A stretch of DNA of 64,000 bases from Hyaloraphidium curvatum SAG 235-1 (GCA_025558095.1 JAIVFI010000034.1:186001-250000); one strand, 5' to 3'; positions 34,424 to 62,890 are shown, counted from the first letter of the stretch. The notes: generated by a model not told the origin, from the letters alone. A program made the numbers and translations.

Positions 34424-35994
34424 ATGGACGCCGCCGCGGACGGCGGCGCCGCAATTGCGGGCCCAATGCCGCCGTTCTCCGCCGAGGAATGGGCGGCGCT
34501 GTTCCCGATGCCGCCTCGCGGCGGTACGGACCCGTCCGACGTGCCCAACGAACTGCGCGAGCTCGCGGCGCGGGTCGCGGAGGAGAGGGACGCGGCACCG
34601 CCGCTCACACGGGACGCGTTCTACGCGGGGCTCGAAGGGGCGCCGGCGGTGCGGCTACTCGCGCGACTCCGCGCGTTCCTGGCGCGAACGGTGCTGCCGC
34701 ACTACGGCCTTCTCAGACTGCTGCAGCAAGCGTTCACGCTGTTCTTCGTGGCGCTCGTGTGGATTGAGAACGATGGCCGGTTCGGTACCCGACAACTGAT
34801 CGTGGCCACGGTCGCCTACGTCTTGAGATTTGCCATTTGGGACTCGCGCGTTTTCGTCGGCTGGTTCGCCCCTTCCGAGAAAGACGTTTTTATGAGGCCC
34901 GACGACGCGACCAGCTCTGGCTCGTCTGCCGATGGCTACTTCCTTGCAGGCGTCGTCCGCTATCGCCAGATCGCGCAGGCCACCGGCACATGGCTCACCC
35001 AACATGTGCCGCGGGACTCCTTGTGCACTTGCCCGAGACCGAGCTGCACCGGGGGAGTTATCCGTGCCGTCTTCTTCTCCTACTCTGCGTCTGCCGTCTC
35101 AAGGGTGGTCGGGTACCTGTCCATTTACGTCGTGCTCTATGTTTGGACCCCTATCATCACCTTCGGCGCCTCAACCTGGTCGACGCCGTGGGCCGCCACG
35201 CTCTCGGTCGTCGGCATCGTCGTTATCTCGGTAATGGTGGCCATTGTGATCCTGGGAGGGGATGCCCGTAATGCGGCGGTGTCAGGGCTCGATACTAGAA
35301 TGCGCCGTCGCGCCGCCCAACGTTGTCTGGACGACTTGCTTGGACGACTCCATGACGCTCTCGCCCGCCCAGACGGGCCATGGAAGCCGCGTGATGCCAA
35401 GACGGAGCCCTATATGGCACTGCACGCTGCGCTTATCATGACCTGGAGGCAGACAAAAGCGGGTGCAGACGCCCGCCGCGCCGTTGCCTGGGCGGGTTTG
35501 CTTGGGGATTCGGTTGGGCTCCTCATTGTTACTGTGGGTTGCGGTGGCAAAACGTTCTTGAGGATCTGCGGACTCTGACGGCCCGTTCGCAGATCGGATC
35601 CTCTTGCATTCCCGCCAACCTACTCGCCGGGGTTCTGTTCCTTCTCTTGTTCTTGCTCGTCTTTGAAATCTCGGTCCTGGCCGCCGCCAACACTTCCCCC
35701 GACCGCATCGCCGCCCTGTACCGCTCCGCCTCGCACTCCCTCCGCTCCATCGGCGCCTCCGCCTCCGCCCGCGGCCGAACCGACCTCGCCACCTCCGCCC
35801 TTTGGCACGAGCGAATACTCACAGGCTTTGCTGACGTCGATCCGTATCGCGTCCGCGCGTTCGGCGTGCCCGTAACATACGATCTCACGCGCACGATCGT
35901 GGCGACGCTCTTCACCCTCGGGGTCGGGCTCTGGAGCGTGCTGCGTGGCGCTGGGGTGGGCGTGACGATCGAGATGGTGTGCCCAGTAAGTTGA
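34424..35994 (+). CDS. 7-TM membrane protein, GR/OR/DUF3537 (7TMIC)-like family, copy A
   Basis: FSAEEWAALFP, PLTRDAF, HVPRDSLCTCPRPSC, EPYMALH..W. Phase-0 intron 35534-35592, then IGSSCIP, AAAN..LYR, AFGVPVTYDLTRTIVATLFTLGVGLWSVLRGAGV..VCP. About 503 aa. Confidence 0.8.
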
Positions 35995-36146
35995 CGCTCG
36001 GCAGACGGGTTCGGATGAATTGGAGCTCAGCCTAGTTTACCGCTGTCTCAGTCCGCGGCATCTACTGGGTGACGCACCCGCTGCTTCACTAAGTGCAAAC
36101 AATTGAGGAGAGATGGCAGCGGCCTTCGGAGCTCCACTGCCACGGC

Positions 36147-37220
36147 ATGTGCCTCGACGCGCGGAGCTTTTGCATACGGCGCACGTGCGCTCATTGCGAG
36201 CGGCCCGGCGCCGAGCGCGCTTGCACCGCCTGCGGCTCGGTCCTCTACTGCAACAGGAGCTGCCAGCGCGAGCACTGGAAGGCGCACGCCCCCCTCTGCG
36301 CGGCGCTCAAGTGGCCGGTCGATTTCGCGTTCGTGCTTTCGCAAAGGATCAGCGCTACGCGGCCCGGTGGCTTCAGCTGCCCGATTTCCGAGCTGCTGGA
36401 CGATGCGGACTCGGCTTTCGGGTGCTTCGTCATGCTCCGGGTCCAGGTGGGCGGCGTCAAGACGGATTGGTCCGTCGAGGTGCTGCTGGACAAGGGCAAG
36501 GCGCACTGGCACGTTAAGGGCAAATGCCACCACCACATCTTCGGAAGCGCGACCAAGGAGACCGATGACGTGGCGGCCGCGCAGGACTCGGGCTCGGAAG
36601 GATCGACCTCGTCGGATTCGGAGGAATCGACGGCTGCCTCGGAAGCTTCCAACAACGGCTCGGAATTGGACAAATCTGACGAAGGATCTGACGAAGGATC
36701 GGCCGATACTGCGGCCCGAGAGCTCGCGGAGAAGGAGCGCGAGCGAGCCCTCAAGGTCCTCTCCATCCTCGGCCTCTCCGCCCCCCTGGCCTCATCCACC
36801 CCGTTCGTCGCCACCTCGCCTCTCCCCTTCTTCCCGGGGCCCAAGAACCAGGCCCGCTGCCGCCCGCCGGCGAACAGCGGCAAGGAAGAAGGCCTCAGCA
36901 AACGCGAAGCCCTGCTCGCCCCTATCCCGACCGACCTGCCCGCCCGCCCGACGAGCTATGCCATGCCGCCGACTGCCGAGATGTTCAACTGTCCCGGTGG
37001 TGCTCCGCTGTTTGCCAAGAAGGGGGATGCGGTGGCGTCGGCGTGGTTCGCTGCGGCGGAGGTCGGAAACGTGCTCAGGATGGCAGAAGAGGAGAGGGCG
37101 GCGCTGGTGGAGGTTAATCTGCGCACGGGGATCTCCAGGGTCCTGGTGAGGGAGGGGTGGAAGGTCCTGAGGCTCGCGGAGGGCGTGGTGGAGGCGCTGA
37201 GGGAGGCGATCGCTGCTTGA
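36147..37220 (+). CDS. MYND-type zinc finger protein
   Basis: CAHC..ACTAC..LYCNRSCQREHWKAHAPLC near the N-terminus, with an acidic Ser-rich linker downstream. Start codon uncertain. Confidence 0.8.
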   Translation: MCLDARSFCIRRTCAHCERPGAERACTACGSVLYCNRSCQREHWKAHAPLCAALKWPVDFAFVLSQRISATRPGGFSCPISELLDDADSAFGCFVMLRVQVGGVKTDWSVEVLLDKGKAHWHVKGKCHHHIFGSATKETDDVAAAQDSGSEGSTSSDSEESTAASEASNNGSELDKSDEGSDEGSADTAARELAEKERERALKVLSILGLSAPLASSTPFVATSPLPFFPGPKNQARCRPPANSGKEEGLSKREALLAPIPTDLPARPTSYAMPPTAEMFNCPGGAPLFAKKGDAVASAWFAAAEVGNVLRMAEEERAALVEVNLRTGISRVLVREGWKVLRLAEGVVEALREAIAA

Positions 37221-38247
37221 GTGCCCGGGCCGGTTCGGAGTGCGTCTTCTGACAGATCCGTTTGAGTAGCTTACCATCGTAGCAGTAGATTGATTTCATG
37301 CTTTTCGGCCCTCTTGCACGGTTCATAGCGGTCCTCACCGAGGAGGATGGAAGGGAGCGAGGAATCGAGGTAGGGGAAGGACATGGAGCGGTCCCTTCCT
37401 CTTCTCAATTCCATTTCAACTGCCTATACTCTGTCTCGAGATTGCTCACGGGCCAGAGACAGTGAGGGGCTGAAGGAAACGCCCCGCGCACCCACTTGCC
37501 ACGCCTTCCTAGCGCGATCGGCCGGGCAGTCTGAACGGCAGGGGCGAGCTGGGCTTCCCGCGCACGCAGATGCATTGCGGCAATTGTGAATGATCCGCCT
37601 ACATTGTCCAGGGCGCATTTCGAGAGGTTGAGTCCCGGACCCAATGAGGTCGCGCACCGTTCAGGGTCCTGCGGCCGACATGCCGACAAACGTATCCCCC
37701 CGTCGGCAAGCGCGTGGGAGCGAAGGGCGCGGAAACCAAGCGGCGGAAAGAGTTTCTGGGAAGTGCTAGTCTATAGCTGGTGTGATCCGAGCCGGCATTC
37801 GCGCGCCCATTGGTCATTGGCGGCACGACATGACGCGGGTTCCGAGGTGGGGGACAGTCTACGGAAGGGTGGCCATCGGCGGGCCGGCAGCCGCTTTCGG
37901 GCCCAGCTTTATTCCCCGAGGGACATGAAACTTCACGCTTGCTTTGCGCGGTGTCAAATTGCGCCTTCGTGGGGCACCGAGTCGGGGCAATGATGTGCGT
38001 GTATGGCGCGATCGATCGGGCGCCCGGGGGAAAACCGCCGAGACCGCCGTCCATAGGGGAGGGAAGGCTACTCCGACGCCGGCTGCAATTCGGAACCAAC
38101 TCTGATAACGTTGTCCGGCAGTCCGAGCTGGGATTCGGCGACGTACCAGGTGTGCGGGAATGAGCTGCGCTTTTGGAAATATTGGCCCACGGCGGCTGCG
38201 GGTCCACGCGGTCCCGACTCGCTCGTGACCTTCCTCTCCCCCGCAAC

Positions 38248-38731
38248 ATGCCGACAAAAGCGCTCGAGGCGGCGGTTCCGCCTCTGCCGCCTGCGACGCC
38301 GCCGCCGCCGTACTCGCTGCGCGACGAGGAGCCGCGGCGGAGGGCGTGGCGGCGCGCGCTGTCGCTGATGACGCTGGCCGCCCTGCTCGTCGCCGGCTTC
38401 CTCCTCGGAATGGCCGTCGAGCGCGAGGTAACCCCCGCGAACCGCGGCATTAAACACATCGCTAACCGCATCGTACGTCTCCGCCCCGCCGCGGCGCCCG
38501 CACGCCCCCGCGCAGCTGGCCGCCCGCCGCGACCCGGACCCGCCGCCGGCAGACAACAACTTCGTCGCCGCGCTGTCGGCCTCGCTGCCGCCGCCCGCGT
38601 ACTGCCCGCTGCATCGCACCGCACACGGCCGCCACTCGGCCGCGGGCTGGACAATCGAAGTAACCACCGAGATCGACGGGTCCGAAGGGCCCCAGGTGTA
38701 CAGGCTGGGTAGCGACAATCGCGCCCTCTGA
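38248..38731 (+). CDS. Small single-pass membrane protein with PPxY motifs (2 exons)
   Basis: MPTKALE..PPPPYS..TM (ALSLMTLAALLVAGFLLGMAV). A phase-0 intron at 38428-38515 gives a 131-aa product ending ..SDNRAL*. Confidence 0.5.
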
Positions 38732-38992
38732 GCGGACAGCAGTCATTGTACGGACGCATCAGTGCTGGCCGCCGCCGAGGGTCGTGGCTGCCGCGCCAAT
38801 GGCGCCGTTTGGATGGCTTGCTGGCTTCATCAGCTTCTCGTCTCCCGTCTCACTCATTCCCGGACTCGGACTTCTCTGTTCATTTTGGATTGGGTCCCGC
38901 TAATGGGACCCCGCTGTAACTACTGTGTGTCTTACCCCCGTGTACATTAGCAGGCCCCACGGTTCGGCCAACCTTGTACAGATCGTTGATGA

Positions 38993-41900
38993 TCAAGATC
39001 CTTTCTCCTCCCCACCTGCCCCCCGGCACGCGCCCAGCCGCTCATCGAACCACGCCATGATCAGCTCGTACAGCTCCCGGGTCGCCTTGCCCCCTTGCGC
39101 GGCCATCGAGTGGTCGGAATCCGGGAACGGCTGGGCGCGCCACGCGGAGGCCGGCACGCCGTTCTGGACCAGGCGCGCCAGCAGCGCCGCCGCGTTCTGG
39201 AAGTGCACGTTGTCTGCCCGGGATCCGTCTCAGCTTTGCCGTCGCCTCTGGAGCCCGCACGACCGGGGAGACTCACCGTCCGCGGTCCCGTGGGCGATCA
39301 GCGTCCCCCCTCTTGCCCATCCCTGCCCCTCGCCCTTGACGATCCCCTCCTCGTAACCACTGGCGTTCTCCGTGGGCATACCCAGGTACCTCTCCGCGTA
39401 CGCACTATCATATAGCCGCCAATCCGTCACGGGCGCCACCGCCGCCGCTGCCCGGAAGAACCCGGTGTCGCTCTCGACCACCTTGAGCGTCAGGTAACCC
39501 CCGAAGCTCCATCCCCAGAGCGCCATCCTCCCGGCATCCACGTACGGCAGGCGCGCCAGCTCCCCCGCGGCGCGGAGCACGTCGCGCGCCTCGAGCTGGC
39601 CGAGGCGGCCCGCCACGGCGGACTGGAAAGCGCGCCCGCGGCCGAAGGTGCCCCTGCCGTCGACGGCAAACACGACGAAGGGGTCGGAGGGGTCCGAGGC
39701 GAGGGCTGCGTGGAAGCCCAGGGCGAAGGAGGGGGAGGCGGCCTGCGAAGCCGGCCCGCCATAAACCCGGACGAGCGCGCGGTATCTGGTCGCCCCCGTG
39801 GGCTCGAAGCCGGGCGGGCGGAGTTCGGTGGCGGAGACGACGATGGCGGGGTCACGGTCGGTGGCCGGGAGGGGAAGCTCGAAGGTGCGGAGGCTCGGGA
39901 GGTCGAAGTCCTCGAGGGCGAGGCGCAAGGGAGCGTTGAGCTCGCCGGGAATCCGGGCGCCAGAGCCAGCGAGGCGGATGATTTCGGTAAAGGGAATCGA
40001 AGGGCCGAGGTACGAGAGGGGGAGGTACTCCCCGCGCGGGGATAATCTGCGCACGAAGAAGCAAGAAGGTGGCATGGCCGCGGCGTTGCGGGGCGCGATG
40101 TGGCGGGAGGCCGACAGGGAGCCCGTCAGTGATTGTAGAATAGAATGACCCGACTTCCCCTGCCGGAGCGGGAACGATGGCGGCTCGTCCGATTGCGAGA
40201 GCAGCCGCAGGCGGGGTCGATCGCCGTGCTGCCGATCCTCGAGGTTGACAGTCCACACGTGACGCTCCATTCCCGACACCGCCACAACCGGCGCCGCGTA
40301 CGCCTCCGGCGTGAGCGTTGCCTCGATCACGAGCTCCGTGCCGTTGGAAAAGCCGGCGATCGCCGTCGCGTCCCACCCGCTGCCCCAAGTGATCCAGCGG
40401 TCCACGCCCTTGGACCGCGGCGACTCGACCAGGGCGACGTGCTGCCGTCCGTCACCTGGCCTCGTGGCCAGAAACGCGTGCCGCCCGCTGCCGAGCATCA
40501 CAGGCGGGCCGAGCTCGACCCACGCCCCGTCCTCTGCCGCAAACTCGCGCACCGCAGCCGCAACCCACATCCCCTTCCCCGTGTCCCACGATACCAGGAG
40601 CTCCTTGATCGTTAGCTGCACCCTGTCCGCAGTCCGCAGCAGCAGCTCGGCGCCGCCTTCCTCCCTCCAATCTCCTTTCAGCTCGCCGGGGTACCAAGCC
40701 GCCTCGAGCACGTAAAAGTCTGTGCCGCCCCATGCCTCCTCGATCCCAAAGACCCTGCCCAGCAGCCCCCCGCCCCCGAACCCGCGGTCCCAGATCCACA
40801 TCCCAACGCTTGGATTCGCCGTGCCCGCCTTCGGGTACCGGAGCTCGACGGTCTCGGGGTACTGCGCCGTGCCGTAGATGGGTATCTCCACCGTGCCGAC
40901 CTGCCCGACGTCGGTCCGCAGGAAGGCCATGAGCGGCGCAGAAGGGTGCGGCCATAGCGCCGACGTGCGTTCGAAGATCTCCTCCTCGTAGAGCCAGTCC
41001 GCAACGCCGTTGTACACGGTCGGCGAGCCGTCGTTGGTGACGGGAAACGGTTGGCCTAAAGGTAGAGCGAGCTCGTGCACGTTGTTCCCGGCGACAAATA
41101 CGAGGTGCGGCGAAGAAGGGTGGAACTCTGCATGCTGGATCCGCATGTTGGCGGCGTCCGAGGTTTCGTTGCCGAGCACGGGGAAACAGCTGCCCGAGCC
41201 TTGAAGGGAGACGGGGCACACAAAGTAGTTGGAAGCGTGGGAGTGCCGCCGGCGCTTTTCGCGGCGGGTTTCGATCAGGAGCAAGATGCCAAGATCGGCA
41301 TAGCTCGGCGAGGGGACGAAAGAAGTCACGCCAGCTCGTGAGTCTCCGTCGGCCTTTCGGGACACGATGAGGAGAGGTCAACGAGGAGTCCGTTTGGTCC
41401 TCACCGCTTTGGGTAGCTGCTCGCTCCGCAGCACCACCCGCAGCTCCCCGTCCCTCTCCGGCACCCACTCATCGCCCTCTTTCCCGCTCCATATCCGCCC
41501 GTCCCCGGCGTTTCCGAGCACGAAATCCCCACTCGTTGCGTTCTGGACGAGGTAGTAACCGTCGCGGTCGTTCCACTCCACCCAGACGACCCCCGGGGTG
41601 CCCGCAGAGGGAAAGGCGGGATCAAACGCGTCCGAGAGGGTGTACCGTCGGCGCGTTCCGTTGACAGGCGGTCGCACAGGGGCTTGAGACGTCGATGACA
41701 GGTCTCGTTGTGCGAAGAAACCTGCGGTCGTGGCGGTCCACCTTGGCATAGAGCCCCAGACTCCTTACGAAGACACGCCAACGCACCTAGCAAATGCGAC
41801 AACGCGAAGCCGATTGCGGTTCCCGCGACAAGGAGGACGAGTGCCTCGATCCGCGTCCCGCGCCAGCGGGGTTTCCACCACCGCCGCGACCGCGCGATTA

Positions 41901-42132
41901 CCGGTCCCAGCAAACCGAACCGCGCGTCCAAGGCGTCCGTCTTCGTGAGAAGCGCGTCTCCGCCGAAGTCGACGTCGACGAACGCGTCGCGGCCCAAGAG
42001 AGGCGATGACGCGTCGCTCGCGACTTCGTCGGCAGAGGTCCGGAACAGACCGCGACGCGCTTCCGGTGGCGACCTGGTCTTCATGGGGACCAGAGAGCTC
42101 GCCTCGCCGCGTTCCGAGGAGACTGCGGCCAT
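38993..42132 (-). CDS. Dipeptidyl aminopeptidase, peptidase S9B (DPP IV / Ste13-Dap2-like), type II membrane
   Basis: N-terminal TM, NGVADWLYEEEI, YPKAGTANP, VYGGPASQ, DGRGT, WGWSFGG, VAPVTDWRLYDSAYAERYLG, HGTAD|DNVHFQN and FPDSDHSM. Confidence 0.95.
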
Positions 42133-42253
42133 GTTTGGGGCTGACCGCTCGGAGGAATCGGAGTTCCGAGCGGCCAGCAAGGGAACGTCGCGCCGCAGAT
42201 CCATCGCGTCGAATCACCTTCGGTCTGTCTCCCTTGCCCATCGCGGCTTGGAA

Positions 42254-43057
42254 ATGGCTCCTGTCATCATCGTTGCGGGTGCCGGCCCCGGTATCTCCGC
42301 TGGCGTCGCCGAGAAGTGGGCGGCGAACGGACACAATGTCGCGCTCCTTTCGCGAACCCAGTCGAAGCTCGACGAGATGGCCAAAGGTGGGATTCTGTGA
42401 AGAACTAGGGCCGCGATCAAGTGACAATGCTCCTGCGAGCAGAGATCGGTGCCAAGAGCCCGGGCGTGAAGGTCAAAGGCTTCGCCGTGGACCTCAGCGA
42501 CAGCAACGCCGTTGCAGAGGTCCTGGAGATCGTCAAGAGCGATCTCGGACCCGTCAGCGTCATCCACTGGAACGCGTTCGGCCCCTCCAAGAGCCTCCTC
42601 GCGGCGACTCCCGAGGACATCTCTTCGACCATGACCGTAGCCGTCAGCAACCTTCTGGTCGCCGTGCAGAAATGCCTTCCCGATCTTGAGGCAGCCAAGG
42701 GCGGCGTCCTGATAACTGGTGGCGGGCTGTCGCTCGAAACCGACGGCAGTGTGACCATGGCCGTCAACTACGGTATCGGCACGCTGGCGCTCGCCAAGGC
42801 GGTTCAGCGGAAAATGACCCACATTCTCCATGTCGATCTCGAGAAGAAGGGGATCTACGTGGCGGAGGTCACCGTCTGCGGCGCTGTCAAAGGTGGGCTG
42901 ACACCGTCACGTGCGCATCTTCATGCTTGAACCTGCTTCTTCAGGGACGCCGTTCGCCGGACCGGAGGGCGGGATCCCGAGGGAAAAGATCGCGGACTTG
43001 TTCTGGGATCTCTACTCGGCACGGGACCCGAAAGTGTGGAACAAGCCCATCATGTGA
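42254..43057 (+). CDS. Short-chain dehydrogenase/reductase (atypical, NAD(P)-binding Rossmann fold)
   Basis: VIIVAGAGPGISAGVA, VALLSRTQSKL, FAVDLS, VLITGGG, LAKAVQR, GIYVAEVTVCG. Two introns. Confidence 0.85.
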
Positions 43058-43097
43058 TCGGTGTTGCAATCGATCTGCTTTTGGCCCCCCTCTGGAG

Positions 43098-44848
43098 CTA
43101 CTTGCCGGCAGCCTTGAGCTTTTCAACGCACTTGACCACCTCCGTGACCAACGCGACATTCCTCCAGTCCCCGCCCAGCCCAGCAAGCAGCTTGTTCTGG
43201 ACGTAACCGACGGAAATCTTGTGGTTCTTCTCCCACTGGAAGAGCATGCCACCGTACCTAGAAACAGTCAGCGACAGTCAAGCGAGCGCGGGAATGCACT
43301 CACCCGAACCATCCTCGCCACTCCCAGCCCTCGCCGATCTGGTCCTCAGAGTACAGGCTCTTGGGAGGCTGGACTGTGATGTCGTACCGACTCTGCGGGA
43401 TCTTCTTGCCCGCGGGTCCCTTTGCCCAACCCCCGACGAGGTAGTTGTTCATTTGGCCAAGGCACATGTCGACGAGATCCTTCGTTCGCGGGTCTTCTTC
43501 CTCGGCTTTTGCCAGTGTCTTGGGAGAAATGAAGTCCGGGAGCTCGGGAAGGGAGCCGCCGTTGGCCATGAGCGCGCCGAGTTTGGCCAGCTTCGAGACG
43601 TCATGAGCACGGCCCAGGAGAAGAAGCGTGAAAAGCCCACCGATTTCGCGTTGGTAACGTGGTATCCGCTGGGGACCTCGGCAGTCAAACCCCACTTGTT
43701 GTTGGAGCCCACGGTTGTTTCGTTCGCCGGCGAGTCAGGAAGGCGCGGGATCGACTGGATCAGAGCCTTGTAGAACCGGCCGTTGGGGTCGCCGCCGGCG
43801 ATCTTCATCATCCCTGTGAGACCGGGGTGCTCAAAGACCTGCGACGTCGACGGGAGGAGGGACTCGGGGAGGCCGCAGTGGAGCTGTGTGCCGAGGGCGG
43901 GGTTGACCTTCTCGCGGAGGATCCGTCCGTTGGTTTCCTTCTTGTCGGTCACCCGCCGCACGAGCCTGTGATTAGCCATGGAAGTTAGGCCAGGCGCGAG
44001 GACGTTGCAGAGGTTGCGTACTCGTTGAGGTACCACTGTTGGACAGGGAGCAACAATGAGCAGCGGACAAGACGCTGCAGACGGACACTCTCACCCCGCG
44101 CGTAATGGCATGGTCTGGCGTCGAAAGCGCAGCGGTATAGTCAGGTGAAGCGTCGTCGCAACGAGTCTTCGCAACTCACAGCTCTTGACGAGCTTGCCGT
44201 CGTTGTTGTGCTTTTGCCGAGCCACCTTCGCCGCGAGCTTGTCCAGATCGTGCAGCTCCTCCTTGGTCGGCACGTTCTCAAGGTCCAAATGCTCCACCCC
44301 GCCACTGTGCATCAGGAGATCCCGAACCAGCACGCCTTCCTTGCCGCCCTGGGCGAATTCGGGCCAGTAGTGCGCCACAGGCTTGTCGTAGTCCAGCAAG
44401 CCACGGCTGACGAGGTGTGCAATGGTAATGGCCATGATCTGGAAGGTGGGAGGCAGGAGTCGTGAGCGGCCGAAGGGGGACAACATCTTGCAGACTCCCT
44501 ACGGTCTTCCCGGCAGAGTGAATGACCTGGATCGTGTCCTCCGTGTACGGCTTGGTCTTTTCCTCGTCGCACCAGCTGTTCACAGTGCGCGTTAGCCGCT
44601 TGTCCCCACTCGCTGTCTCCCGGGCGTTCACGCACCCGGCCGTCAAGGAAACGACCTCTTTCCCGTCCACGAAAACCACGAAGGATGAGCCGAGCTCTTG
44701 TTCATCATTCGGATGGGGTTCGAAGTGCTTCACGAACACGTCCTTGACCGATTCGAAGCCAGGCGCCCTAAAGGGAGGCAACGTTGAACTTCGAGCGCTC
44801 CCGGGGATCCCGACAAACCAACACTCGGGCCACGAGATTTGTAGCCAT
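43098..44848 (-). CDS. Beta-lactamase/transpeptidase-like serine hydrolase (family VIII esterase type)
   Basis: APGFESVKDVF, SxxK motif HSAGKT, LDYDKPVAHYWPEFAQGGKEGVLVRDLLMHSGG, AEVPS, WFG|.YGG. Multiple introns. Confidence 0.88.
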
Positions 44849-45008
44849 GGCAATCGATGTGTGTCCTGGCCCTGCCGTCGGAAGCCGTCTTCTTGAAACG
44901 TGAGTCGGGGGATCGCCACAAGGTGCCGCTTTGCCGCACCCCCCGCCGCGGGCGCGCGCGTCCCGGCACGGGACCAAAGAACCGCAACGGCAATCCCCCG
45001 GCCCCGCG

Positions 45009-46818
45009 ATGCCGCCGAAGAAAACCAAGAAGAAGGAGGCGCCCTCCGCTGTCGTGAGTTGCGACCAGTTGGCGGCGGCGTCGCGGCGCGAAGGCGCGAA
45101 CGCGGCCCTGTCTCGCGGTGGAAGGGTCGGAGTTGCTCGACACCACGCGAAACGGCCCTGGCTGCCGGTCAGACCGCGTTCTGTTGCCCCCGCTGACTCT
45201 ACTGTCTCTTCAGCAGCGCGCCGGCAATGTCATCGAGGACCCCGTGCTCAGAATGGTGGAGGCTCTACCTCGGGAAGTGCTGAACAGCATTGTGGCCGCG
45301 GCAGTCAAGGAAGGCGCGGTCATCACTGCCGATCAGATCTCTACGAATCTGCAGGTCGCGCGGGCGCGCGGAATCGGAGAGCTGGCGTCGGAGGTCCGCG
45401 GCCATCGCGTTATCCGCCTCCTTCACGTTCTCACAACCTCCGACAGATCCTCGTGGCCATCTTCCGCTACTTGCCGATTCGCGACAGGATCCTCGTTGTG
45501 CGCGCGTGCCGCCACTTTCGGCAGCTGTCATCTCAAGGAGTGTTTGACGAGGTGCGGTTTCTGAAGGTCCCGACGCGCAAGGAGCTCCACGAGTGGGTAC
45601 CATTCTCGGTGCTTCTTGACTTTGATGCTTACGACTCCTCCTTCGTGCCCAGTCCATTCGCCTGGATGAAGAAGCACACCGTTTCGGCTTTCCTGCGCTC
45701 GCTGCCGAACGGAACCGTCAAGTCGCTCACAGTCCACCACCACACGCTTTCGCCCGCCAGCCTTGCCAGCCTCGCAAGGAATGAGCTCTCTGCACTGACT
45801 GAGGTTTGTCGCTGGGACCCTCAAACCTTTTTGCTTTGCTGATTGGGCTCGCAGCTCAACCTCGTCGGGACCCACTTCCTGCACAAGTTCAACGGGATAA
45901 ACCGAATCTCGTTCCCCAGCCTCCGCAAGTTCCGCGTCATGGATTACCAGAATCACCGCGGAAACGCGACGTCCGCCATTCCCCAAGGCTTCGTGGAGTT
46001 TCTCCAGAAGCACGACACGCTGCAGGAGATCTTTGTCGAGCTGTCGCTGGCCGGCGAAGCGGGGCAGGCGCTCCTCTCCGGCGATCCGAGCAAGTTTGCC
46101 CTCAACAAGAGCTTGAGGGTGCTCCGCGCGGAATGCTCCATCTCGCTGGACCAATTCACGAACATCCTGCTCACGTTCCCGAACCTGGTTGAGCTCGAAA
46201 TCTCCGGTCTGCACCTTAATGGCCATGCTACGCAGCAGAAGGAGGTCTCCCTTCCGGGCAACGGCTTCATGACGATGCGCATTCCTTTCCTATCCGAGGA
46301 GAGGCTCAACGAGCTGGCGGCGCTGCGGGCGCAGAAGCAGATGGCTCGGCTGCAGAAGCTCACGATCCACGAGAGCGCCTACGGATACGGCTACGGCTTC
46401 GGCGACACCAACTGCTCCTGCCACTTCGTCGGGCAGACCGTCGGGCCGTCGCTCGAGACGCTGGAGTACTTCTCGCACCGGATGATTTCGAGCTCTTTCG
46501 TCGGCCAGTTCCCCGCCCTTCGCCGCTTGCGCGTCCTGCAGCCTTCCGTCAGCTGGTATTCTCACAACATCCCGTCGCCTGCCAAGCCCTTCGCCGGTTT
46601 CGATGCTCCGGGACTGGAAGAGCTCGTCCTCTTTGGCAAAATGCCTTCCTGGAAAGAAGAAGTCCTTCGCCCGTATCTGGCTCCGGAGGCAAAGGTTCGT
46701 AGCTGGATGGGGGCTTGTGCTCGACCTTGATCTGACTGGTCCTGTCAAGGTGACGATCACCCGAGCCGACAGGAAGGAGACGAGGCTGGAGGACAAGGCT
46801 TGGCTGATTTGGCTGTAG
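45009..46818 (+). CDS. F-box protein with LRR-like C-terminus
   Basis: ELASE|ILVAIFRYLPIRDRILVVRACRHFRQL (F-box). LRR-like units FPSLRKFRV, SLRVLRA, FPNLVELEISG, FPALRRLRV, PGLEELVL. Confidence 0.75.
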
Positions 46819-46967
46819 ATTCAACTCAGGTCGATCATTCGTTTCATGATGACAGATTCCTAGAGATCTTCTCTTTCCCTTCGAGAGTTTCACTGTTGCG
46901 TTTGTGCGCGACCGCAGTGCCGCCACCGGCTCGACAAACAGGCGTCTCCCGCTTCTGTCCCCCAGCA

Positions 46968-50277: not shown

Positions 50278-50662
50278 ATGTCGTTGCTTCGGAATGACCA
50301 CCTATGTCGGATGTCTGCAGTAGAGCCTTTTTCGGGATGCCTGCTCGTGGAATCCTGGCCCGTGACAAGCAGGCGTGAGGTCCGATCTTGCTGAATCCAC
50401 GCCTCCGGTACTGAAGCTCAAATTCGACCGAAGAAGCTCTTGCCATTGTGGTCGTCTTGATGCGCATGCAATGGAACCCCTGACTGGAGCTGATCGTTGC
50501 TCGGACGGCCATGTCCGATCCGGCCAGCAGCACCGCCTCATCCCTCCCTCAGCGTCGGGCCTTCTCCGGTCTCCGCCGGGAGCGAATCGCTCTCCGTTTC
50601 CACGCGATTGGGATTAATTTGGAAATCTCGGGCTCCTCCGGCCCTCGGCGCCAGTTCTCGGC

Positions 50663-53600: not shown

Positions 53601-53901
53601 CTCGCGCAGCGTGACGCTTTCCCCGCCGGGCATCTTCTACTCCAAGAAGAAGTTCAACATCGGCCCGGAGCTGGACCGCAGCCTGATCACCGTGATCGTG
53701 CGCAACGACTGGGTCTCGATGGTGGACAAACCCGCGGGGTCGGTGCTCTTTATCCCGTGCGACCTGTTCCCGATCTCCTGCCACTCGATCACGAGGGTGA
53801 CGACCATCTTCCAGCGGTCGTGCGGGGATCCCGCTGGCCGGATGTTCTCGGCGGAGTGGAACTCGGACGGATCCACGGCCACGGGGCCGGTGCAGGGGTA
53901 G
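50663..53901 (+). CDS. Polytopic membrane protein with C-terminal class-3 lipase domain
   Basis: Many hydrophobic helices across 50900-52900, then IVAVRGT..DW, LITGHSLGAGLA, SPPG, NDWVS and CHSI. Confidence 0.8.
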
Positions 53902-53941
53902 CGGACGTGTAGGGCGCTCCGCTGACAAGATTGTCCTTCAT

Positions 53942-54631
53942 TCACTGCTTCCCGCCCGATACAAAGTTGGCGAAACCCGGCAGCTTGCCCTCGATCGCGA
54001 ACGCAGTTGCCAACAATGCCATGCTCCCGACGCCGTGCTGCACGATGCCGTGCTCGAGGTGGAACTTCCAGTCCATGGTTGACAGAGTAGGCTGCGCCAG
54101 GAACATGCCCGCGCCGGCGGTGATGAAGGCGAGCCAGGCGGACCGCGCCTTGAGCTGCAGCGACACGGCGTAGTACGCCGCGATGGTGGGGATCCGTCCG
54201 ATGAGGCGCTCCGTGTTCACGCTGACGTAGATGTTGGGGAAGTAGGGCGAAGTGTGCTGCACGGGAGGAAGAGGACGGGAGGCACGTCAGACGCCGTCAT
54301 CGACAGAAAGGAAGCAACCAAGGACGTCCGTGTTCCGGGACGTACCTCCAAGAAGCCGACAATGAGGCCACCGATGCCGGCAACTTTGCTCCAGGTGCTG
54401 GGCGCCTGCGGGACCACAGGTTATTGGCCTCCGGTCGCGCCAACCGACGCACGGACCAAGACCCACCGCCCGGTTCATTGCGTAGATCATTACGGAGTTG
54501 GTAGCGAAGTACCACGCCGTGGCGAGGTGGAACCACCGGGGCAGTAGGGACCAGTCCGAGGGCGAGAAGAGGCCGGGTCCTTTCGCCGGCGGGAGCTCCG
54601 CGAGTTCGGGTTTGGGCTTGGAGAGTGCCAT
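53942..54631 (-). CDS. Small multi-pass membrane protein of unknown function (3 exons)
   Basis: MALSKPKP.. exons joined by two short introns, with several hydrophobic segments. Ends ..SGGKQ*. Confidence 0.6.
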
Positions 54632-55536
54632 GGCGGGAGCGGAACGAGCGGCAGTCGTTCGGTGGCGCCGAACGGGAGACGTTGGCGTGGCGTCGGGCCG
54701 ACGGTCACTCGGTCGGGCGGCTGCCCGGGCGGCTTCGCAGCCCGCTACCCGCAAGGGCGCAGATGCGCGGGCGGTAACGGCTTGCTTGCCGGCAAATGTA
54801 CTCGTCCCGCGAGCCTCGGTCCCTGGTTGACCCCGTGTGAGCGCAGCTCGAGCACAGTCCCGATTTCCTCCCTCCATCCACCGGCACATCACTCCAGTCA
54901 GCAGCGGTAGCGGCGACGGTGCCCGGCGGGCGGGTGGCACAAGTCCAGGAGCTGGTGTGTGCGCAACTCCTGCCCCCCGCTTGGAGATGTCCGGGAGCTT
55001 CTTCCGCGTCACACGCCACGTACGGCCTCCCGCTGATATGCCGCAGGGCGTCGGGCGTGTGCGCAGGCAGCGTCCCTGGCCGTCGATCGTCTGGATTGCC
55101 TTGTCGGTGGGAGCTTCCTTCGGCCAGGGCCGCGGCGACTCCTAAGGGACCTGGTGGGCCGTCCGGTGGTAAGTTTCTTCGACGCTTTGCCAGCTCATTT
55201 CGGTGGCCGGTTTGCTGGAGCTTGGTCCCGTCCCGAGGAGGTTGGTTTGCGTTGCTTCCGATGGGTGACACGATAGATGGGTGACATACAGTGTGAGGTG
55301 CGTTTTGAGACACGCGCGGCCCCGCCTCCACCGAGATAGCAGCTCTACAGAGCTGTTTACGTGTTCTAGTTCACTTCGAGTTCTTCCCGCGACGCATTCC
55401 ATCGGACCGGGTTTACTCGCCCGAGCATGTGCCGGCACAGCCCGACCCGGCCGCGTCGAGTCATCCCAGACCCACCCTCCGAACGACTCACACCAACTTC
55501 CGCAAACTCAATCCGGAATCCGAGAAGACGACCGCC

Positions 55537-56238
55537 ATGCCTCCGTACCCGCCGCTCGAGACCACCGTGCAGTGCCTGTGCGGCAAGGTCCGCCTCGGCG
55601 TCAAGGTCCTCCTCGCTTTGCCCGTCTCGGGACGACGCTGACCCTCGCAGAGCGCCTCGTCCATGCGCCTCGTGTGCTTCTGCAAGGACTGCCGCGGCTA
55701 CTACGAGCACCGCCGCGAGGGGAACCCGTCGCTCCCGGAGCTCGAGGCCGGCGGAGGGGTCGACTACACGCAGGTTCCGCGGCCGCACCCCGCCCCCGCA
55801 TTCCTCCGCCGCTCACCGCCTTCCTCCTGCGGCAGGTCGGCCCCGGCGACATCACCGTCCTCTCCGGGCAGGAGCACCTCCGCGCCGCCCGCCTGCGCGG
55901 CCCCAAGGGGCAGCCCCGCGTCTGGGCGGCGTGCTGCGGGACGCCGCTCTACTCGGCCGGAATGTCCGCGATGCTCTACACCTTCCTCGTTCCCGAACAC
56001 AAGAGGGGGCCCGTGGACTTCAAGATCATCGGGCGGGACGCCACCGGTCCGGTGGGCGAGGACGTGTCGAAGGGCGTGCCGTGGACCTGTGCGTGGTCGT
56101 TCCGCGGCCCCATGATCCTCGCTGACCCAAGACCACCCGGCAGGGCCGTTCTCCATGATTGGCAGGCTCTGGGGGGAGAAGAAGACGCCGGTGCCGTTCG
56201 ATGCGCAGACCGCCGAGCCGGAAATCGTCAAGCTGTGA
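55537..56238 (+). CDS. Mss4-like/GFA zinc-binding protein (DUF6151-like)
   Basis: QCLCGKV, LVCFCKDCR, GGVDYTQ, RVWAACCGTPL. Three short introns. Confidence 0.8.
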
Positions 56239-56375
56239 ACGGCGTCGACTCCCTCAACTTTGATCCCGGCATCCCCATCTTGGTCTTGACTGATTCTTCC
56301 ATTTCGACATAGCACTGGATTTAACGCCGCATCGAAATACACACCGTACCTGGATTACACCCTCGCGGTCCATTC

Positions 56376-57693
56376 TTAGCCCGCGGTCGGGGGCTCGTTC
56401 TGCGGAGGCGGCGGAGGGTTGGGCAGCGGCAGCCTGCTGTCCACGTCCGTCCTCAATCCATGTCCGCCGGGGCTCCCCGGCGACGGCACAGAAAGCTGCG
56501 ACGGCGGCTCGACAGCCTCTTCGGGCTCCACGTCGGCGGCGCGCTTGGGCGAGTTCGCCACGCACATGCCGTTGGAAGCGCAGCGGGTCCCTTCTTTGCA
56601 GTACTTCTTGGAGCCCCCGCAGGGGGCATGGCACTTGCCGTCCTGCCCGCAGACGGCCGCCCCCACGCAGTACGAAGCCCCGCAGGGCGCGTGGCACTTC
56701 CCGTCGGACCCGCACACGGCACCGTTGATGCACACCGAGCCGCCGCACACGGGGTGGCAGCTCCCGCCGCGGCACGCGTACCCGTTGGGGCAGTACCTGT
56801 TCCCCGCGCCGCAGGCCCAGTGGCACGCCATGTCGGCCCCGCACACGGCGCCGTCGGCGCACCAGAAGCCCGATCCCGGGGGGCACTCCGGGTGGCACTT
56901 GTTGTCGGTGCCGCACACGAAGCCCCGCTTGCAGTAATGGTCGTTGTCGATGCATTTCGGGTAGCAGAGCCGGTTTTCGCCGCAGATCCGCCCAAAGGCG
57001 CAGTAGCTCCCGTACCCGCACTCGGGATGGCACTTGTTGTCGGTGCCGCAGACGAACCCGTCCTTGCAGTAGTGATCCGAGTCCACGCACGCGGGCCTGC
57101 ATTTGTTGTTCTCGTCGCAAACCTGCCCGTCGTCGCAGTACGTCCGCCCGTTGGGGCAGGCCCGGCGGCACCTGTTGTCGCTCCCGCAGATGTCCCTGCC
57201 GTCGGCGCAGTAGTGCACCTTGTCGGGGCACGGCTCGTGGCACCGCCCGTCGGAACCGCAGATGCCGCGGACGCAGTAGGTCTTGGAGCCTGCCGGGCAG
57301 GGCTGCACGCACGTGTCCGTGTTGACGTTGTCGTTCTCGTTGGGGCACAGCTGGTCGTGCCGGCAAGCAAAGGTCCACGCCATGCGGCAGCAGATGGTTC
57401 CGCGTTCCTGGGCGGGGACGGCGGGTCAGGGGCCGCTGCTTCCTCAGGGCCGCATGCGAACGCACGTAGCAGTTCAACCCGCACTTCACCCCGCCCCCGA
57501 CGCAGTCCCGCTCCCCGTAACCCCCCAGTTCGGACGGCGCGCCGGACTGGAGCATTAGGTACCCGAGCGAGGCGTTGGTCGGCGCGGCCGCCGGTCCCAT
57601 GTAGCCCAGCGCCAGGCCCAGCGACAGGTTCGCCACGACGGCGGCGCGCACGGCGCCGGCAAAGGAGCGCACGGCGAGCGCCGGGAGCGCCAT
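56376..57693 (-). CDS. Secreted or anchored Cys-rich tandem-repeat protein
   Basis: Hydrophobic N-terminus, one intron near 57407-57464, then 11 four-Cys repeats, a KR site and a Pro/acidic tail. Confidence 0.75.
56560..57312 (-). repeat. 11 tandem ~21-24 aa Cys repeats: C-x3-C-x4-7-C-x4-6-C(G)-x3-4
   Basis: Examples: CRPACVDSDHYCKDGFVCGTDNK, CYPKCIDNDHYCKRGFVCGTDNK, CHAPCGASYCVGAAVCGQDGK. Confidence 0.9.
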
Positions 57694-58103
57694 GGGGGGC
57701 GCCCGGCCGGTCTCGTTCCGTGTTTGTTTGGTCGTCCGCCCGTGTTTGTCCCTTCCGTGACTGACTGACTTCCCGGATGACGGGCTTTGCGGGGCCGAGT
57801 CCTGGCTTCCAGGGTGCTAAAGACAGTACTCTACGGAGTTCTGATTCGGATTCTAAGGCGTTCCATGCATGACGAATTGTCGGCATGCGTCTGATCCGAA
57901 GCTTCGAAGCAGCCCCACGGTTTCAAAGCACGGCATGCGTGGTCCATAATGTTCGATTTGAAGATTCGAATAAAGCTAGTACATGGTACACGGTGAAGCT
58001 ACATGAAATCTCGCAAGGTAGGAAACCAGACCACGTCCGCCGCATCGCCGCCGTCCAACGAGCCACCCATCGTGCGCCAATTCCCCCCCTCCCGCCGCCA
58101 CCC

Positions 58104-59399
58104 TCACGCATCCCCCCACTTGCCCCCCGCCAGCCCGAACGGCACCACCGGCTTCCTCTTGGGGCTCCCGCCCGCCCCCTTGCCGTCGACGTAGGTCCTC
58201 GGCTGCCTCCGCATCGGCGTGTCCGGGCCGTCGTCGGGGAGCTCGGGGCCGCGGGGGAGGTCGTCCTCGGGCAGGGCGATGGGGGCCAGGGAGAAGGACG
58301 GCGCGGAGGGGAGCGGGCGCGCGGGGGAGGTGGGAGCGGGGGAGGTGGTGGAGGGGAGGGCGCTGGGCGGGGTGCGGAGGAGCCGACTGCGGAGGGGCAC
58401 GAGCAGCTGCGACGGGAAGGCGTTGGTCTACGTCCTTCCTGCGGCACGTGCATGGTCGGCCCACCTCGGAAAGAACCCACCGCCTCCCGCCGCGGAGGAG
58501 GAAGAGCACCAGCGCGAGCTTGGCGAACTGGTACCACGTGGGCCCTCCGGGGCGCTTGGCCGGCGGCGCGGCGCCGACGGCGATGGGGTCGTAGGCGTAG
58601 TCGGCGCCGCGGGCGAGCGACAGCAGCGCGAGCATGGCGAGCACCGGCTTCTCGTCCGCGGGCTTGGCGGGGGCGGCGCCGAGGGCCAGGCGCAGGGCCA
58701 GGTACGCGGGCGGGGCGATGTACAGCGCGTCGAGCACCTGGCGGGGGTGGCGGGTCCAGATCTGGCGTCAAAGTGTTAGCGACAGTGGTTGATGAGGTGG
58801 CAGCAGAGCAGGGTTACCTTGTTGGCGGCGTAGGAGGCGGCCGCACCGGCCAGGGTCAGCACCGCGGCGTGGGCGTGCTTCTTGGGCACGCCGGCCTTTG
58901 CCAGCAAGTCGAACGCGGGGGCGGCGCGGACCAGCGCGGCCTCCGCGGCGGCCAGCTTCTCGAGGGCGGCTGCGCCGACGCGCGCGGCGGCGTTCCCGAG
59001 CGGGCCGTCCGAGCGCGGGGCGGCCAGCAGCGCGTGCAGCGCGGCGGCGAGCGGGAGCACCGCGGCGTCGGGCGCGGCGGGCAGCGCGGGCGGGTCGACG
59101 GCCGGCAGGGCGGGCAGCGCGGGCAGCCTCGCGGGCAGCTGCGACAGCGCGGCCTGCGCCGCCCCCTTCAGCGCCGCGGCGTCCCTCGGCAGCTTCTCGG
59201 CCACCTGCTGCACCGCGGCGCGCGCGCGGACCCCCGCGGCGGACAGCACCCGCGCGACCGCCGCGGCAGGCGACTCCTGCGCGGAGGCCTGCCCGGCGCC
59301 CTCCCCCGCGGCGCCCTCATCCCTCCTCTCGGCCTCGGCCTCCGCCACGCCGTCCGTCGGCGCGTCGACAAACGCCTCGGGCAGCTCCCCCGTGCTCAT
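58104..59399 (-). CDS. Divergent TB2/DP1/HVA22 (REEP/Yop1)-like membrane protein with Ala-rich N-terminus
   Basis: Spliced core LYIAPPAYLALRLAL..WYQFAKLALVLFLLRGGRRWVLSE|LLVPL resembles the REEP pattern YPAY.S.KA..YY..K..F..WL..GA..IY...P. Two introns. Confidence 0.5.
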
Positions 59400-59786
59400 T
59401 TCTCGGAGGATGCGGGGCCCGGAGGTCGAGGTCCCGCGCAAACTGTGCGCAAAGGGTCACGCGACCGGTCGGCCCCGGCCTAAAGCGGGCTCGCCGTGCG
59501 CCGCGCGATAAGTGCGCTCGTCTGAGCGCTGGACGGGCGCGGAAAGAGGAGCCGCAGGAAACGGCGAAGGGGAGGAAGCGGAGCCTGAATTCGGGGCCGA
59601 GTAGAAGTTTGGACATGTGAAAATGCAACCTCGAATCTCTTTCCTCGCACACGTCCAGCGGGGCCTGTCCACCGCCCAGACATGTAAAAAAGACACCTCT
59701 CGGCATCCAATCTGCCATCCTCTGCCCCGATCGGCCGACGATCCGCCCCGACCGACCCTCCCGCAACCCGCACGCCCCTCCGCGCC

Positions 59787-61279
59787 TCACCTGCTCGGGC
59801 AGATGGTCCCCATGGCGACAAACACCCCCAGCCCCCGCAGTATGCTCCACAGCCCCACGACCAGCGTCAACGCCGTGGCCGCCAGCGTCCTGATGACCCC
59901 GTAGTCCACCACGAACCCCAGCAGCCTCGCGCGGTACCTGTCCAGGTCGGCAAAGGTGGCCAGAAGCGCCGCGCGGGCATCGGCCGCGCCGAGGAGCTGC
60001 CGCGACGCTGCGGGGGGGAGCGAGGCGCGGTCGCGGAGGGTGCGGAGCTCCCGCACCGCGTCGAGGTACAGGTCGCGCAGCTCGGCGACGTTGCGGTTCT
60101 CGGCCGCCGTGGCGACGAGGTCGAACAGGCTGGTCATAGCCACGTAGCCGACGTAGACGAGGTAGAAGGAAGGGACGCACGAGCCCGCGCCGGCGTTGGC
60201 GGCGGCAAAGGCGGCGTAAGCGCCCACGGAAAGGTACAAATGCGTGGTGGCCGAGAACTGCCGGATGCCCCGGGCCCAGGCGGCGGTAAGGAGGTGGTGC
60301 AGCTCCTCGAAGGGCTCGGGACGGCCCGGTCCGGACGGTCGGGGAAGCAGCGCCGGGTCGTCGGCCTCGAGCGCGGCCCCGAAGCCCGAGAGCATCGCGG
60401 CGAGGGCGAGCTTCGCCGCCCGGAAACGCACCCGCTGGGTGACTTCCAGGAGCGGCACGTTGGTCGAAAAGCGCAGCGAATAGTTGAGCGAAACAGGGCG
60501 ACGCCCGCGATCCACTGCGCCAGCAGGAAGGCGCTCCAGGCGCTCGACCAGGCCCCCGGGGCGGTCGCGGCGCTCCAGACCACGCAGAGCATGAGGAACA
60601 GGTACATCGCGAGCTTGGCGGACAGCTCGGCGATGCGGAGTGCGGAAGAGCGCCATCGGCAGGGTCCGGCGCAGGTCCGTGCAGGGCACGGGCAGCGGTC
60701 GTCCCCTTCCCGGTGCCGCAGCAGCGGCGCGGCGCCGTTTTCGGCGGCCGACGCGTCCAGCAGCTGCTCCCAGCGAGCGAGGCCGGCGGCCCCGTGCGCC
60801 GAGTAGTCCTTGGCTGCCGCCGGAGACGCCTCCTTCCGTCCCGTTTGCGTGCCCGTCCGGAACGTGGCCCGGTACTTGGCAAACAGCTGGATCAGGACGA
60901 CCGACACGAACGTGCAGACCAGCTGGCCGACGGTGCCCACGACGAGCTGGGCCGTCCCGTACACCGACGCGCCCAAGACGATCGGCAGCGGCATGATGGC
61001 GCAGACGGAGAGGAAGAGCGCCGTGGCGCGGAGCAGCGCGCGGCTGTTGAACCCGTCGAGCGTGAGCTGCAGCCACGTCACCGCCCGCAGCCCGGGCGCG
61101 TTCTCGAGCGCGGCGAGGAAGGGGGCGCGGGACAGAGGCGACGACTCGCGGAGGGAACGCGCGCGGTCCGCCGGCACGGGCAGGCCGCACAGCGGCGCGG
61201 CCAGCGACGGCGGCTGCGGGAACATGGCGAGGAGCTCCTGCGGCGAGAACATCGCGTCGGGCTTTTCGGAGTCTTCCAT
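59787..61279 (-). CDS. 7-TM GR/DUF3537-like family, copy B (one apparent frameshift at ~60491-60493)
   Basis: FSPQELLAMFP, PLSRAPF, HREGDDRCPCPARTC, EPFEELH..W, GSCVP, AAEN..LY, LLGFVVDYGVIRTLAATALTLVVGLWSILRGLGV..ICP. The frame switches at CTG TTT CG with no intron available. Confidence 0.75.
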
Positions 61280-61366
61280 CGCGCGTGGGTGCCCGCGGGA
61301 GACAGTGGAATATTCCTGCGACGATTCTCCGCCCTGCAGCTGTCGCCACACCAACTCTCGACGGCA
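61280..61366. promoter_or_regulatory. Putative 87-bp bidirectional promoter between 7-TM copies B and C
   Basis: Divergent ATGs at 61279 (-) and 61367 (+). Both starts are supported by the conserved (F/G)xxEE..A.(F/L)P N-terminal motif shortly downstream. Confidence 0.55.
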
Positions 61367-62890
61367 ATGCGCGGAGGAGGGACAGAGGGCAGCGCTGCCG
61401 ACATCCTGGGTGCCGAGGAATGGCTCGCCCTCCTTCCGTCGGCGACATTCCCCGGGAAGGGGGTCTCAACTTCGGAGCCGCACGAGTTCATGGAGAGCGA
61501 CCCCGCGGCGGACGCCCGCAGCGAAATGCCGCTGACGAGGGCAGACTACGACGCGGCCTTCGCGGCTTCGTTGCCGCATCGTGCGACTCTCCTTCTGCAA
61601 CGCCGGTTGCCGCACACCAACGCGCATCTCTGGCCTCGCATGGCATACTACACCGTGCCCCACCTCGTGCTCGCGTTCGCCTCGATCGGGGACATGCTCT
61701 CCTCCGGGATGTTTGACGAGCGAGGGGTCGGCGTCGGCCTCGCCGCCCTCGCCATCGCCCACCTATTCCACGCCTTCCTGCTGCCGCCGATGGTCCAGGC
61801 GGCGCTGGCGGTGCAAGCGGACCTCGATCGCCATCCCTTCGCGCCCTACGTGCGGTGGACCAGACTGGCCAGGCTGGCCCAGGGCCGACCGGCCCCGACC
61901 GAGCTCGGCGCCGCGGAACTCGCGGGGATCGCGGACGGCTCCGGCGGCGTTTCCCTAATGGCACACGATGCCGACGATCCCCTCTGTCCCTGCCCCGCGC
62001 CGAGCTGCGGCGGGTCGGCGGTGGGCACGTCTGCGGTGTACCAGTCCGTCCTCTTCGTCTACGGAATTCTTCCGGGCCTGGTCAGCTGGACCGTCCTTGC
62101 CCAATGGACCTTTCTGGTGACACTGGCATCGGAAACCTGGACATCGTGGAAAGCGTTCTTCGCGGTCTGGACCATCCTCGCCAACCTCGCCGTATGGGTG
62201 TCGTTCGAAGTGTCGTCCACGGACGTCGCCCTCATCCGCCTCGAAAGCAAGCTCAAGCACCGAGCGCTCAAGGACGCCCTCGCGGCCTTTGTTGACCGCT
62301 GCTGCAATGCTACCCTTGCCGAGTCGGCGGACAACGAGGCCGCCGCCCCCATTTGCTGGCCCTCCCCCGAACCGTACATCACCCTCCACCTCGCCTTCGC
62401 CCCCTCGTGGCGGGCAAACAAAGGCATCACCGAAGCCGTCACCAGCCTGTTCCTCGGCCTCTTCCTCGGCATGGCCGTCCTCTCCCTCGTCCTGCTCATC
62501 GGCTCGGGCTGCATCCCGGCCTACATCCTCGCCGCCGCGGCCATCTACCTCGTCTCCCTCGTGCGCCACCTCGCTGACGCCGTCGCCGCCAACTCGGGCG
62601 TGTCTGCCGTCGCCAATCTGTACCGCCGTGCGCGGACCTCCCTCGCCGCGCTGCAGACCGCACATCCGTCCCACGCGGAGCTCCCCCGCCTGCTGGCGCA
62701 CGAGAAGCTGCTGGCGCGATACGAGGCCGCGGTGCAGGAGGACCTGGCGCGGGTGTTTGGGCTCGTCGTGGACTTCGGGCTGCTGAGGGGGCTCCTGGTG
62801 ACGGGGCTGACGGTGGGCGTGGGGCTGTTTGGGATCCTGCGGGGGGCCGGGGCCAGGGCGACGGTGCAGACAGTGTGCCCCGTCTATTGA
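61367..62890 (+). CDS. 7-TM GR/DUF3537-like family, copy C (intronless, ~507 aa)
   Basis: GAEEWLALLP, PLTRADY, HDADDPLCPCPAPSC, EPYITLH..W, GSGCIP, AAN..LYR, VFGLVVDFGLLRGLLVTGLTVGVGLFGILRGAG..VCP. Seven hydrophobic segments. Confidence 0.85.
   Translation: MRGGGTEGSAADILGAEEWLALLPSATFPGKGVSTSEPHEFMESDPAADARSEMPLTRADYDAAFAASLPHRATLLLQRRLPHTNAHLWPRMAYYTVPHLVLAFASIGDMLSSGMFDERGVGVGLAALAIAHLFHAFLLPPMVQAALAVQADLDRHPFAPYVRWTRLARLAQGRPAPTELGAAELAGIADGSGGVSLMAHDADDPLCPCPAPSCGGSAVGTSAVYQSVLFVYGILPGLVSWTVLAQWTFLVTLASETWTSWKAFFAVWTILANLAVWVSFEVSSTDVALIRLESKLKHRALKDALAAFVDRCCNATLAESADNEAAAPICWPSPEPYITLHLAFAPSWRANKGITEAVTSLFLGLFLGMAVLSLVLLIGSGCIPAYILAAAAIYLVSLVRHLADAVAANSGVSAVANLYRRARTSLAALQTAHPSHAELPRLLAHEKLLARYEAAVQEDLARVFGLVVDFGLLRGLLVTGLTVGVGLFGILRGAGARATVQTVCPVY

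Follow-up and report, generated by a model that had tools for sequence, protein, structure and literature searches.

The window analysed here is a stretch of 64,000 nucleotides from Hyaloraphidium curvatum SAG 235-1 (GCA_025558095.1 JAIVFI010000034.1:186001-250000), with a GC content of about 66% and located on contig 34 of a 55-contig, 31.9 Mb genome. A sequence-only reading of the window had pointed to four divergent paralogues of a family resembling the insect odorant receptor (OR) and gustatory receptor (GR) channels, and this was borne out when the window was scanned with a profile built from 93 genome paralogues outside it (annotated as Hyaloraphidium curvatum hypothetical proteins): exactly four places matched, named copies R, A, B and C. 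Their features are listed below, where TM denotes a transmembrane segment and S7a and S7b are the two helices of a split TM7.

9122-9628, +: copy R, 5'-truncated remnant, TM5 to C-terminus (profile positions 330-494 only, 149 bits; profile and comparison with paralogue P0136)
34424-35533, +: copy A exon 1, 370 codons, from the N-terminus as far as TM5 (profile)
35003-35053, +: copy A H-x6-C-x-C-x4-C-x-G motif, intracellular loop 1 (sequence)
35534-35592, +: copy A intron, 59 nt, phase 0, GT..AG, extracellular loop 3, at a position common to many paralogues
35593-35994, +: copy A exon 2, with TM6, anchor, S7a, S7b and Cys tail (profile)
59787-61279, -: copy B, full span, frame broken once near 60485-60488 (profile)
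61280-61366, no strand: spacer of 87 nt between the start codons of copies B and C
61367-62890, +: copy C, one exon, intact, 507 aa; the predicted model has a 7TMIC fold
61964-62014, +: copy C His200/Cys207/Cys209/Cys214, a cytosolic motif that is invariant in the family, possible zinc site
62510-62512, +: invariant Cys382 of copy C in extracellular loop 3, which may pair with Cys504 in a disulfide
62774-62845, +: copy C residues 470-493, the putative pore helix S7b with 475, T479, T482, 486, 489 and gate candidate 490
62876-62878, +: copy C Cys504, extracellular tail, 99% conserved

Copy C is a single open reading frame (ORF; 372 bits against the profile) and copy A (34424-35994, +) is encoded by two exons (272 and 152 bits, 503 codons in total). 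Copy B (61279-59787, -) lies in two frames (201 and 232 bits) that join at 60488/60485, a gap too small for an intron, and its one-base frame break marks either a pseudogene or an assembly error. Copy R is without its 5' part and is 62% identical to P0136 over the last 127 aa only. The splicing of copy A, the break in copy B and a family size in the hundreds (see below) are details that the sequence-only reading did not contain; the motifs it had singled out, AAxN..LY (VY in copy R) and the terminal G-x-x-V-D/T..R..T..T..GL-W/F-xx-LRG, were found in all four copies. Identity between copy C and each of the others is 28-36%, and copy C and the nearest paralogues of A and of B fell in separate clades of a tree built with FastTree, which indicated that the window copies are not local duplicates. 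Copies B and C stand head to head, with start codons 87 nt apart, yet belong to distant subfamilies; divergent head-to-head pairs of family members also occur elsewhere (C12:253713/255794, C12:711225/712619 and C14:39168/40893). In the database, copy C is represented by P0001 (570 aa, window 61178-62887, +), which begins 63 residues further upstream, without a Met and overlapping copy B, and judged by the family alignment the ATG at 61367 appears to be the better start. Copy A was searched per exon and copy B per piece, and later homology searches used alignments without B and C.

The full-length copies had been described as proteins of about 500 aa with seven hydrophobic segments; averaged over the family, hydropathy showed seven peaks coinciding with the helices of two structural models, and there was neither a signal peptide nor a hydrophobic N-terminus. 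Positive charges (K+R) amounted to about 2 per 15 columns before TM1, TM3, TM5 and TM7 and after TM2 and TM4, and to 0.0-0.5 in extracellular loops 2 and 3 and the tail. This positive-inside bias is indirect evidence for the intracellular N-terminus proposed previously. In the copy C model intracellular loop 1 has about 65 residues and intracellular loops 2 and 3 are long and helical, while extracellular loops 1, 2 and 3 have about 4, 17 and 4 residues; longer intracellular than extracellular loops are a characteristic of 7TMICs (PMC9998090). TM4-6 extend into the cytosol as an anchor domain (helices 287-321, 336-380 and 385-432), and TM7 is split into S7a (439-458), two short strands near 462-467 and S7b (470-493), an arrangement that was the same in the second model. 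A GPCR- or rhodopsin-type seven-helix protein was considered and rejected, given the opposite charge bias and the absence of any GPCR among the top 50 structural matches.

The best structural matches of the copy C model were OR/GR structures. The Foldseek TM-scores to solved structures were at most 0.46, where >0.5 is the value used for 7TMICs and the accepted member VbraGRL1 reaches 0.47; the TM-scores to a cnidarian cluster were 0.57/0.71. Searches with hidden Markov models (HMMs) against PDB sequences gave no match for either the whole protein or the C-terminal part, Pfam scans of window pieces and the 93 members returned nothing relevant, and 7tm_7, 7tm_6 and Trehalose_recp matched 0/93 members and no window copy. 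PF12056 (DUF3537) likewise matched neither the window copies nor the 93 members, and a genome search for it was blank with an uninformative control. The OR/GR likeness claimed in the sequence-only reading was supported at the level of fold; by sequence the family is neither DUF3537 nor GR. Structural convergence of an unrelated seven-helix family would account for an identity to OR/GR of 7-13% and for the missing profile link, but is very unlikely considering that two independent models match colinearly over the whole length, including the S7a-hairpin-S7b element, the anchor and the register of the pore Thr. We regard the family as very probably homologous to 7TMICs; the fold match, the segment count and a possible GPCR-like outside N-terminus, the points on which the earlier reading had offered itself for refutation, were all examined and left it standing.

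The Atlas feature search ranked TMEM39 (PF10271) at 0.93 for both queries, with recognition values so low (1859 and 1717) that the scores are weak. Ciliate-rich and arthropod-rich Atlas clusters (71-213 members) scored 0.95-0.96 and may be other unannotated 7TMIC groups.

Three alignments to BmGr9 ended at a constant offset of -46, and in this register, which was derived from alignment end points and in which two entries differ by three residues, family T482 (96%) falls on pore residue T436, position 475 (49% Thr) on T429, 486 (Gly/Ala) on I440, 489 (Ser/Gly/Thr) on Q443 and 490 (Ile/Val/Leu) on the plug residue F444. The BmGr9 TM7 motif lies at 436-444 (PMC11100771). T479 (80%) contributes a third hydroxyl to the face formed by 475 and 482. 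Of the TYhhhhhQF motif of insect GRs and animal GRLs, the family keeps the T (96%) and the final hydrophobic residue, with V/L replacing Y and S/G/T replacing Q. S7b is the least variable region of the family and the anchor is conserved as well, and polar residues that vary between members occur at helical spacing on TM2, TM3, TM4, TM5 and TM6 but not on S7b. A conserved pore with a variable pocket has been described for 7TMICs and the variable sites match this pattern, although entropy here peaks mostly in the inner TM halves.

This distribution bears on the possibility that the 7TMIC fold is not gated chemically from outside, and that the proteins serve as leak or uptake pathways or as endoplasmic reticulum (ER)/trafficking factors (PHTF- or TMEM39-like), the copies differing in cargo or regulation. 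Such roles would agree with the TMEM39 ranking, with a Gly/Ala at the inner gate position that could give a wider pore, and with a comparatively conserved outer face capped by the Trp-rich loop 2 and the Cys pair. We consider them rather unlikely given that a conserved pore with variable TM2-6 is the pattern of a receptor repertoire, that some 300 lineages under 50% identity are unusual for housekeeping roles, and that the Atlas scores carry little weight.

Two further sites are specific to the family. In the cytosolic loop that follows TM2, the invariant His/Cys3 motif may form a zinc site, and Cys382 and Cys504, both on the outer side and each adjoining a short strand in both models, are predicted to form a disulfide. 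Four invariant potential metal ligands in a cytosolic loop under TM2/TM3 could also suggest gating by redox, metal, light or temperature instead of by organic ligands, and non-chemical sensing is known in the superfamily (cf. LITE-1 and Gr28b). To this explanation we give little probability: an invariant site is unable to account for hundreds of diverged copies, and a structural zinc is simpler.

The size of the family was estimated in several ways. A genome protein search and a profile search gave 702 and 893 first-look candidates, respectively, and those scored did match. The DNA pattern for H-x6-C-x-C-x4-C-x-G occurred 302 times in the genome compared with 2 in a reversed control, showing that the motif is not due to chance, and an independent C-terminal pattern occurred 231 times compared with 8. 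Capture-recapture on contigs 1-14 (98 and 71, with 41 shared) scaled to about 520 loci for the genome and correction by the motif frequency in full-length proteins gave about 425-515; overall, the H. curvatum genome is estimated to hold about 430-520 loci. These are spread across most contigs, 43% with a family neighbour within 10 kb. By phmmer, 279 clusters at 50% identity were obtained, of which the best 150 matches were viewed; of 30 looked up, 23/30 were from H. curvatum and 7/30 from other samples. The family makes up about 1-2% of the genome by length and, with its members annotated as hypothetical proteins, is missed entirely by standard annotation.

Integrity was assessed on 69 matches in motif-picked loci, a sample biased toward loci retaining the motif and including contigs 12-14 in part: 26 were intact single ORFs, 26 were full-length with canonical introns only, 6 were full-length with a break and 11 were partial. 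About 75% of the loci are thus intact, corresponding to 320-390 intact genes if the sample is representative. Introns in the 69 loci were located at profile positions 97-116, 254 and 361-370, recurring at 361 (phase 0, loop 3) and 254 (phase 1, TM4), with 0 in the S7 region. The ratio of nonsynonymous to synonymous substitutions (dN/dS) was 0.25-0.37 in six close pairs, the median pairwise identity was 26% and the GC content at third codon positions was 0.84. Purifying selection, conserved introns and intact ORFs indicate that the genes are functional, and gene counts, broken loci and the tree support ongoing gain and loss, in line with the lineage-specific birth-and-death expansion suggested before. 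That the loci represent repeats without function, cargo of mobile elements or duplicates created by the assembly, as the high copy number and broken copies such as B and R might suggest, is scarcely credible and already largely refuted by the dN/dS values, by the codon composition, by a nearest-neighbour identity of at most 77% among 51 intact genes, by conserved spliceosomal introns, by gene flanks in which no shared repeat was found and by orthologues in other species. Transposon cargo was ruled out on the flanks, introns and selection, and haplotype inflation on the lack of near-identical pairs among the 51 genes, a few identical motif pairs existing elsewhere. One such case is C10:807980-814218, with two inverted partial copies (profile 8-218) of identical motif DNA, which is either a very recent fragment duplication or an assembly artefact. 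True domain fusions were rejected, the long annotated models consisting of one or two family units; in P0045 (annotated as 788 aa) a unit is joined to a SIMPL (DUF541) domain, probably by merging of neighbouring gene models.

Relatives were found outside H. curvatum. Run SRR26194948 contains at least four copies on three contigs (up to 48 kb), including one tandem pair, from a eukaryote with 53-55% GC; a split at profile position 254 is common to it and H. curvatum, and the genes next to the copies match H. curvatum genes at 53% and 80% identity. These contigs are a candidate second genome for the H. curvatum lineage. More relatives occurred in three other metagenomes. In the tree, the partner of 5/7 outside proteins in a starred clade was a specific H. 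curvatum paralogue (best matches 40-63% identical), which implies that the expansion is older than these speciations. Pattern scans of metagenome, viral and prokaryotic contigs gave no match (weak tests), and word-seeded homologue searches, an insensitive method, gave 5, 1 and 0 matches. The subfamilies common to H. curvatum and other species at 54-63% identity suggest stable ligands and not an arms race, and thereby bear on an immune-like use in which the channels would detect parasite, grazer, bacterial or kin molecules and trigger Ca2+ influx, dormancy or cell death, by the same mechanism as a sensory repertoire but for another purpose. Such surveillance would fit a large family whose members are dispersed, some of them in tandem or head-to-head pairs, and in which about 25% of the loci are broken or partial and dN/dS is relaxed; the lack of a described flagellum would fit as well. 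With dN/dS >1 in 0/6 pairs and no fused effector domains, we hold it to be unlikely.

Compared with known systems, the family shares with insect OR/GR proteins (Orco, MhOR5, AaegOR10, AgamOR28, BmGr9, Gr43a and Gr64a) the predicted fold over about 300-350 residues, the N-in topology, the TM4-6 anchor, the S7a/S7b split, the pore Thr with a terminal hydrophobic residue and a large repertoire shaped by birth and death, in which the pore is conserved and the TM bundle varies. It differs by the low identity, the missing 7tm_6/7tm_7 match and motif residues Y and Q, the extra His/Cys3 loop, outer Cys pair and C-terminal strand, other introns, a single-celled host and the lack of an identified Orco-like conserved member. 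The conserved last intron in the TM7 region of animal GRLs is absent from the 69 loci. Chytrid and protist GRLs (SpunGRL1, SpalGRL1, TtraGRL1-6 and VbraGRL1-6) are single genes in each of two Spizellomyces species and at most six in the richest protists, and plants have 4-12 copies (PMC7746228), in contrast to hundreds here; no such GRLs were among the matches identified. Plant DUF3537 resembles the family in language-model features (0.91-0.93) and in the likeness at the S7 hairpin to which the sequence-only reading pointed, with a degenerate TM7 motif, but not by a PF12056 match. The short intracellular loop 1 is as in Class-A Euk7TMIC, whereas PHTF (Class-B) has a very long one and is single- or low-copy. 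The accessible part of the 2023 tree-of-life 7TMIC screen mentions neither H. curvatum nor any such expansion, and no description of this family was found in literature outside subscription journals. The family is ordinary in fold and extraordinary in number and host.

Considering fold and conservation pattern together, we infer that the family is likely to consist of ion channels, and somewhat more probably than otherwise forms a lineage-specific repertoire of ligand-gated 7TMIC channels; a ligand-diversified sensory role is favoured to the same degree, and rather more strongly if a defensive use is included. As in OR/GR structures, four subunits would be joined through the TM4-6/S7a anchor with four S7b helices lining the pore, where hydroxyl rings at 475/479/482 could solvate ions and I/V/L at 490 would act as the hydrophobic plug on the outer side. 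On binding of a small molecule in a member-specific pocket in TM2-4/6, S7b would twist such that the small polar residue 489 takes the place of the plug, admitting cations, probably including Ca2+. The Cys382-Cys504 pair may hold the tail of the gate helix against loop 3, and zinc may be bound on the cytosolic side by the His/Cys3 loop, both features being specific to this family. The full proposition is that a single-celled fungus for which no motile stage is described has independently evolved a chemosensory repertoire on the scale of those of animals, made up of several hundred homomeric ligand-gated 7TMIC channels and equipped with a zinc loop and a disulfide-tethered gate of its own. We regard it as evenly balanced.

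H. curvatum, a single-celled aquatic fungus, is described as having neither flagellum nor rhizoid and as forming 4-8 spores inside the mother cell (PMC6899921, PMC8371127). Three dynein heavy chains in its genome exceed the Pfam cut-off (C38:205597, C4:806377 and C16:335699). A non-flagellated fungus is expected to have one, cytoplasmic, dynein heavy chain. IFT57 and RSP3 had no clear genome match (weak tests; the RSP3 control was uninformative), and the organism may retain a reduced axonemal kit and have a recently lost or cryptic motile stage. Since a flagellum is not described, swimming would be a less likely output than a shift in physiological state (spore release, growth, dormancy, stress or defence); a role in controlling that state, or in defence, is no less probable than chemotaxis.

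In the literature read, non-animal genomes have between 1 and 12 7TMIC copies, those of fungi having a single one. The hundreds of diverged copies under selection in one culturable cell are the strongest hint yet that non-animal 7TMICs discriminate many ligands. If the full proposition above is true, no such repertoire would have been known before outside animals, and the family would directly show that chemical sensing is the ancestral, repeatedly expandable function of the superfamily. What 7TMICs do outside insects and nematodes becomes testable here, half of the genes being single-exon and S7b conserved enough to predict gate mutants. New problems are how one cell uses hundreds of possibly co-assembling channels, all together or singly, and what a poorly known non-flagellated fungus senses. 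Given that annotation misses the family, similar expansions may hide elsewhere.

Among the other genes in the window, a Sel1-repeat gene (33572-34333, -; Pfam E 1.6e-46) lies head to head with copy A, with no evidence of a functional link. The ordinary neighbours are an ABCA-type transporter (31489-33300, -), a MYND-finger protein (36093-37217, +) and a GT4 glycosyltransferase (14260-16011, +).
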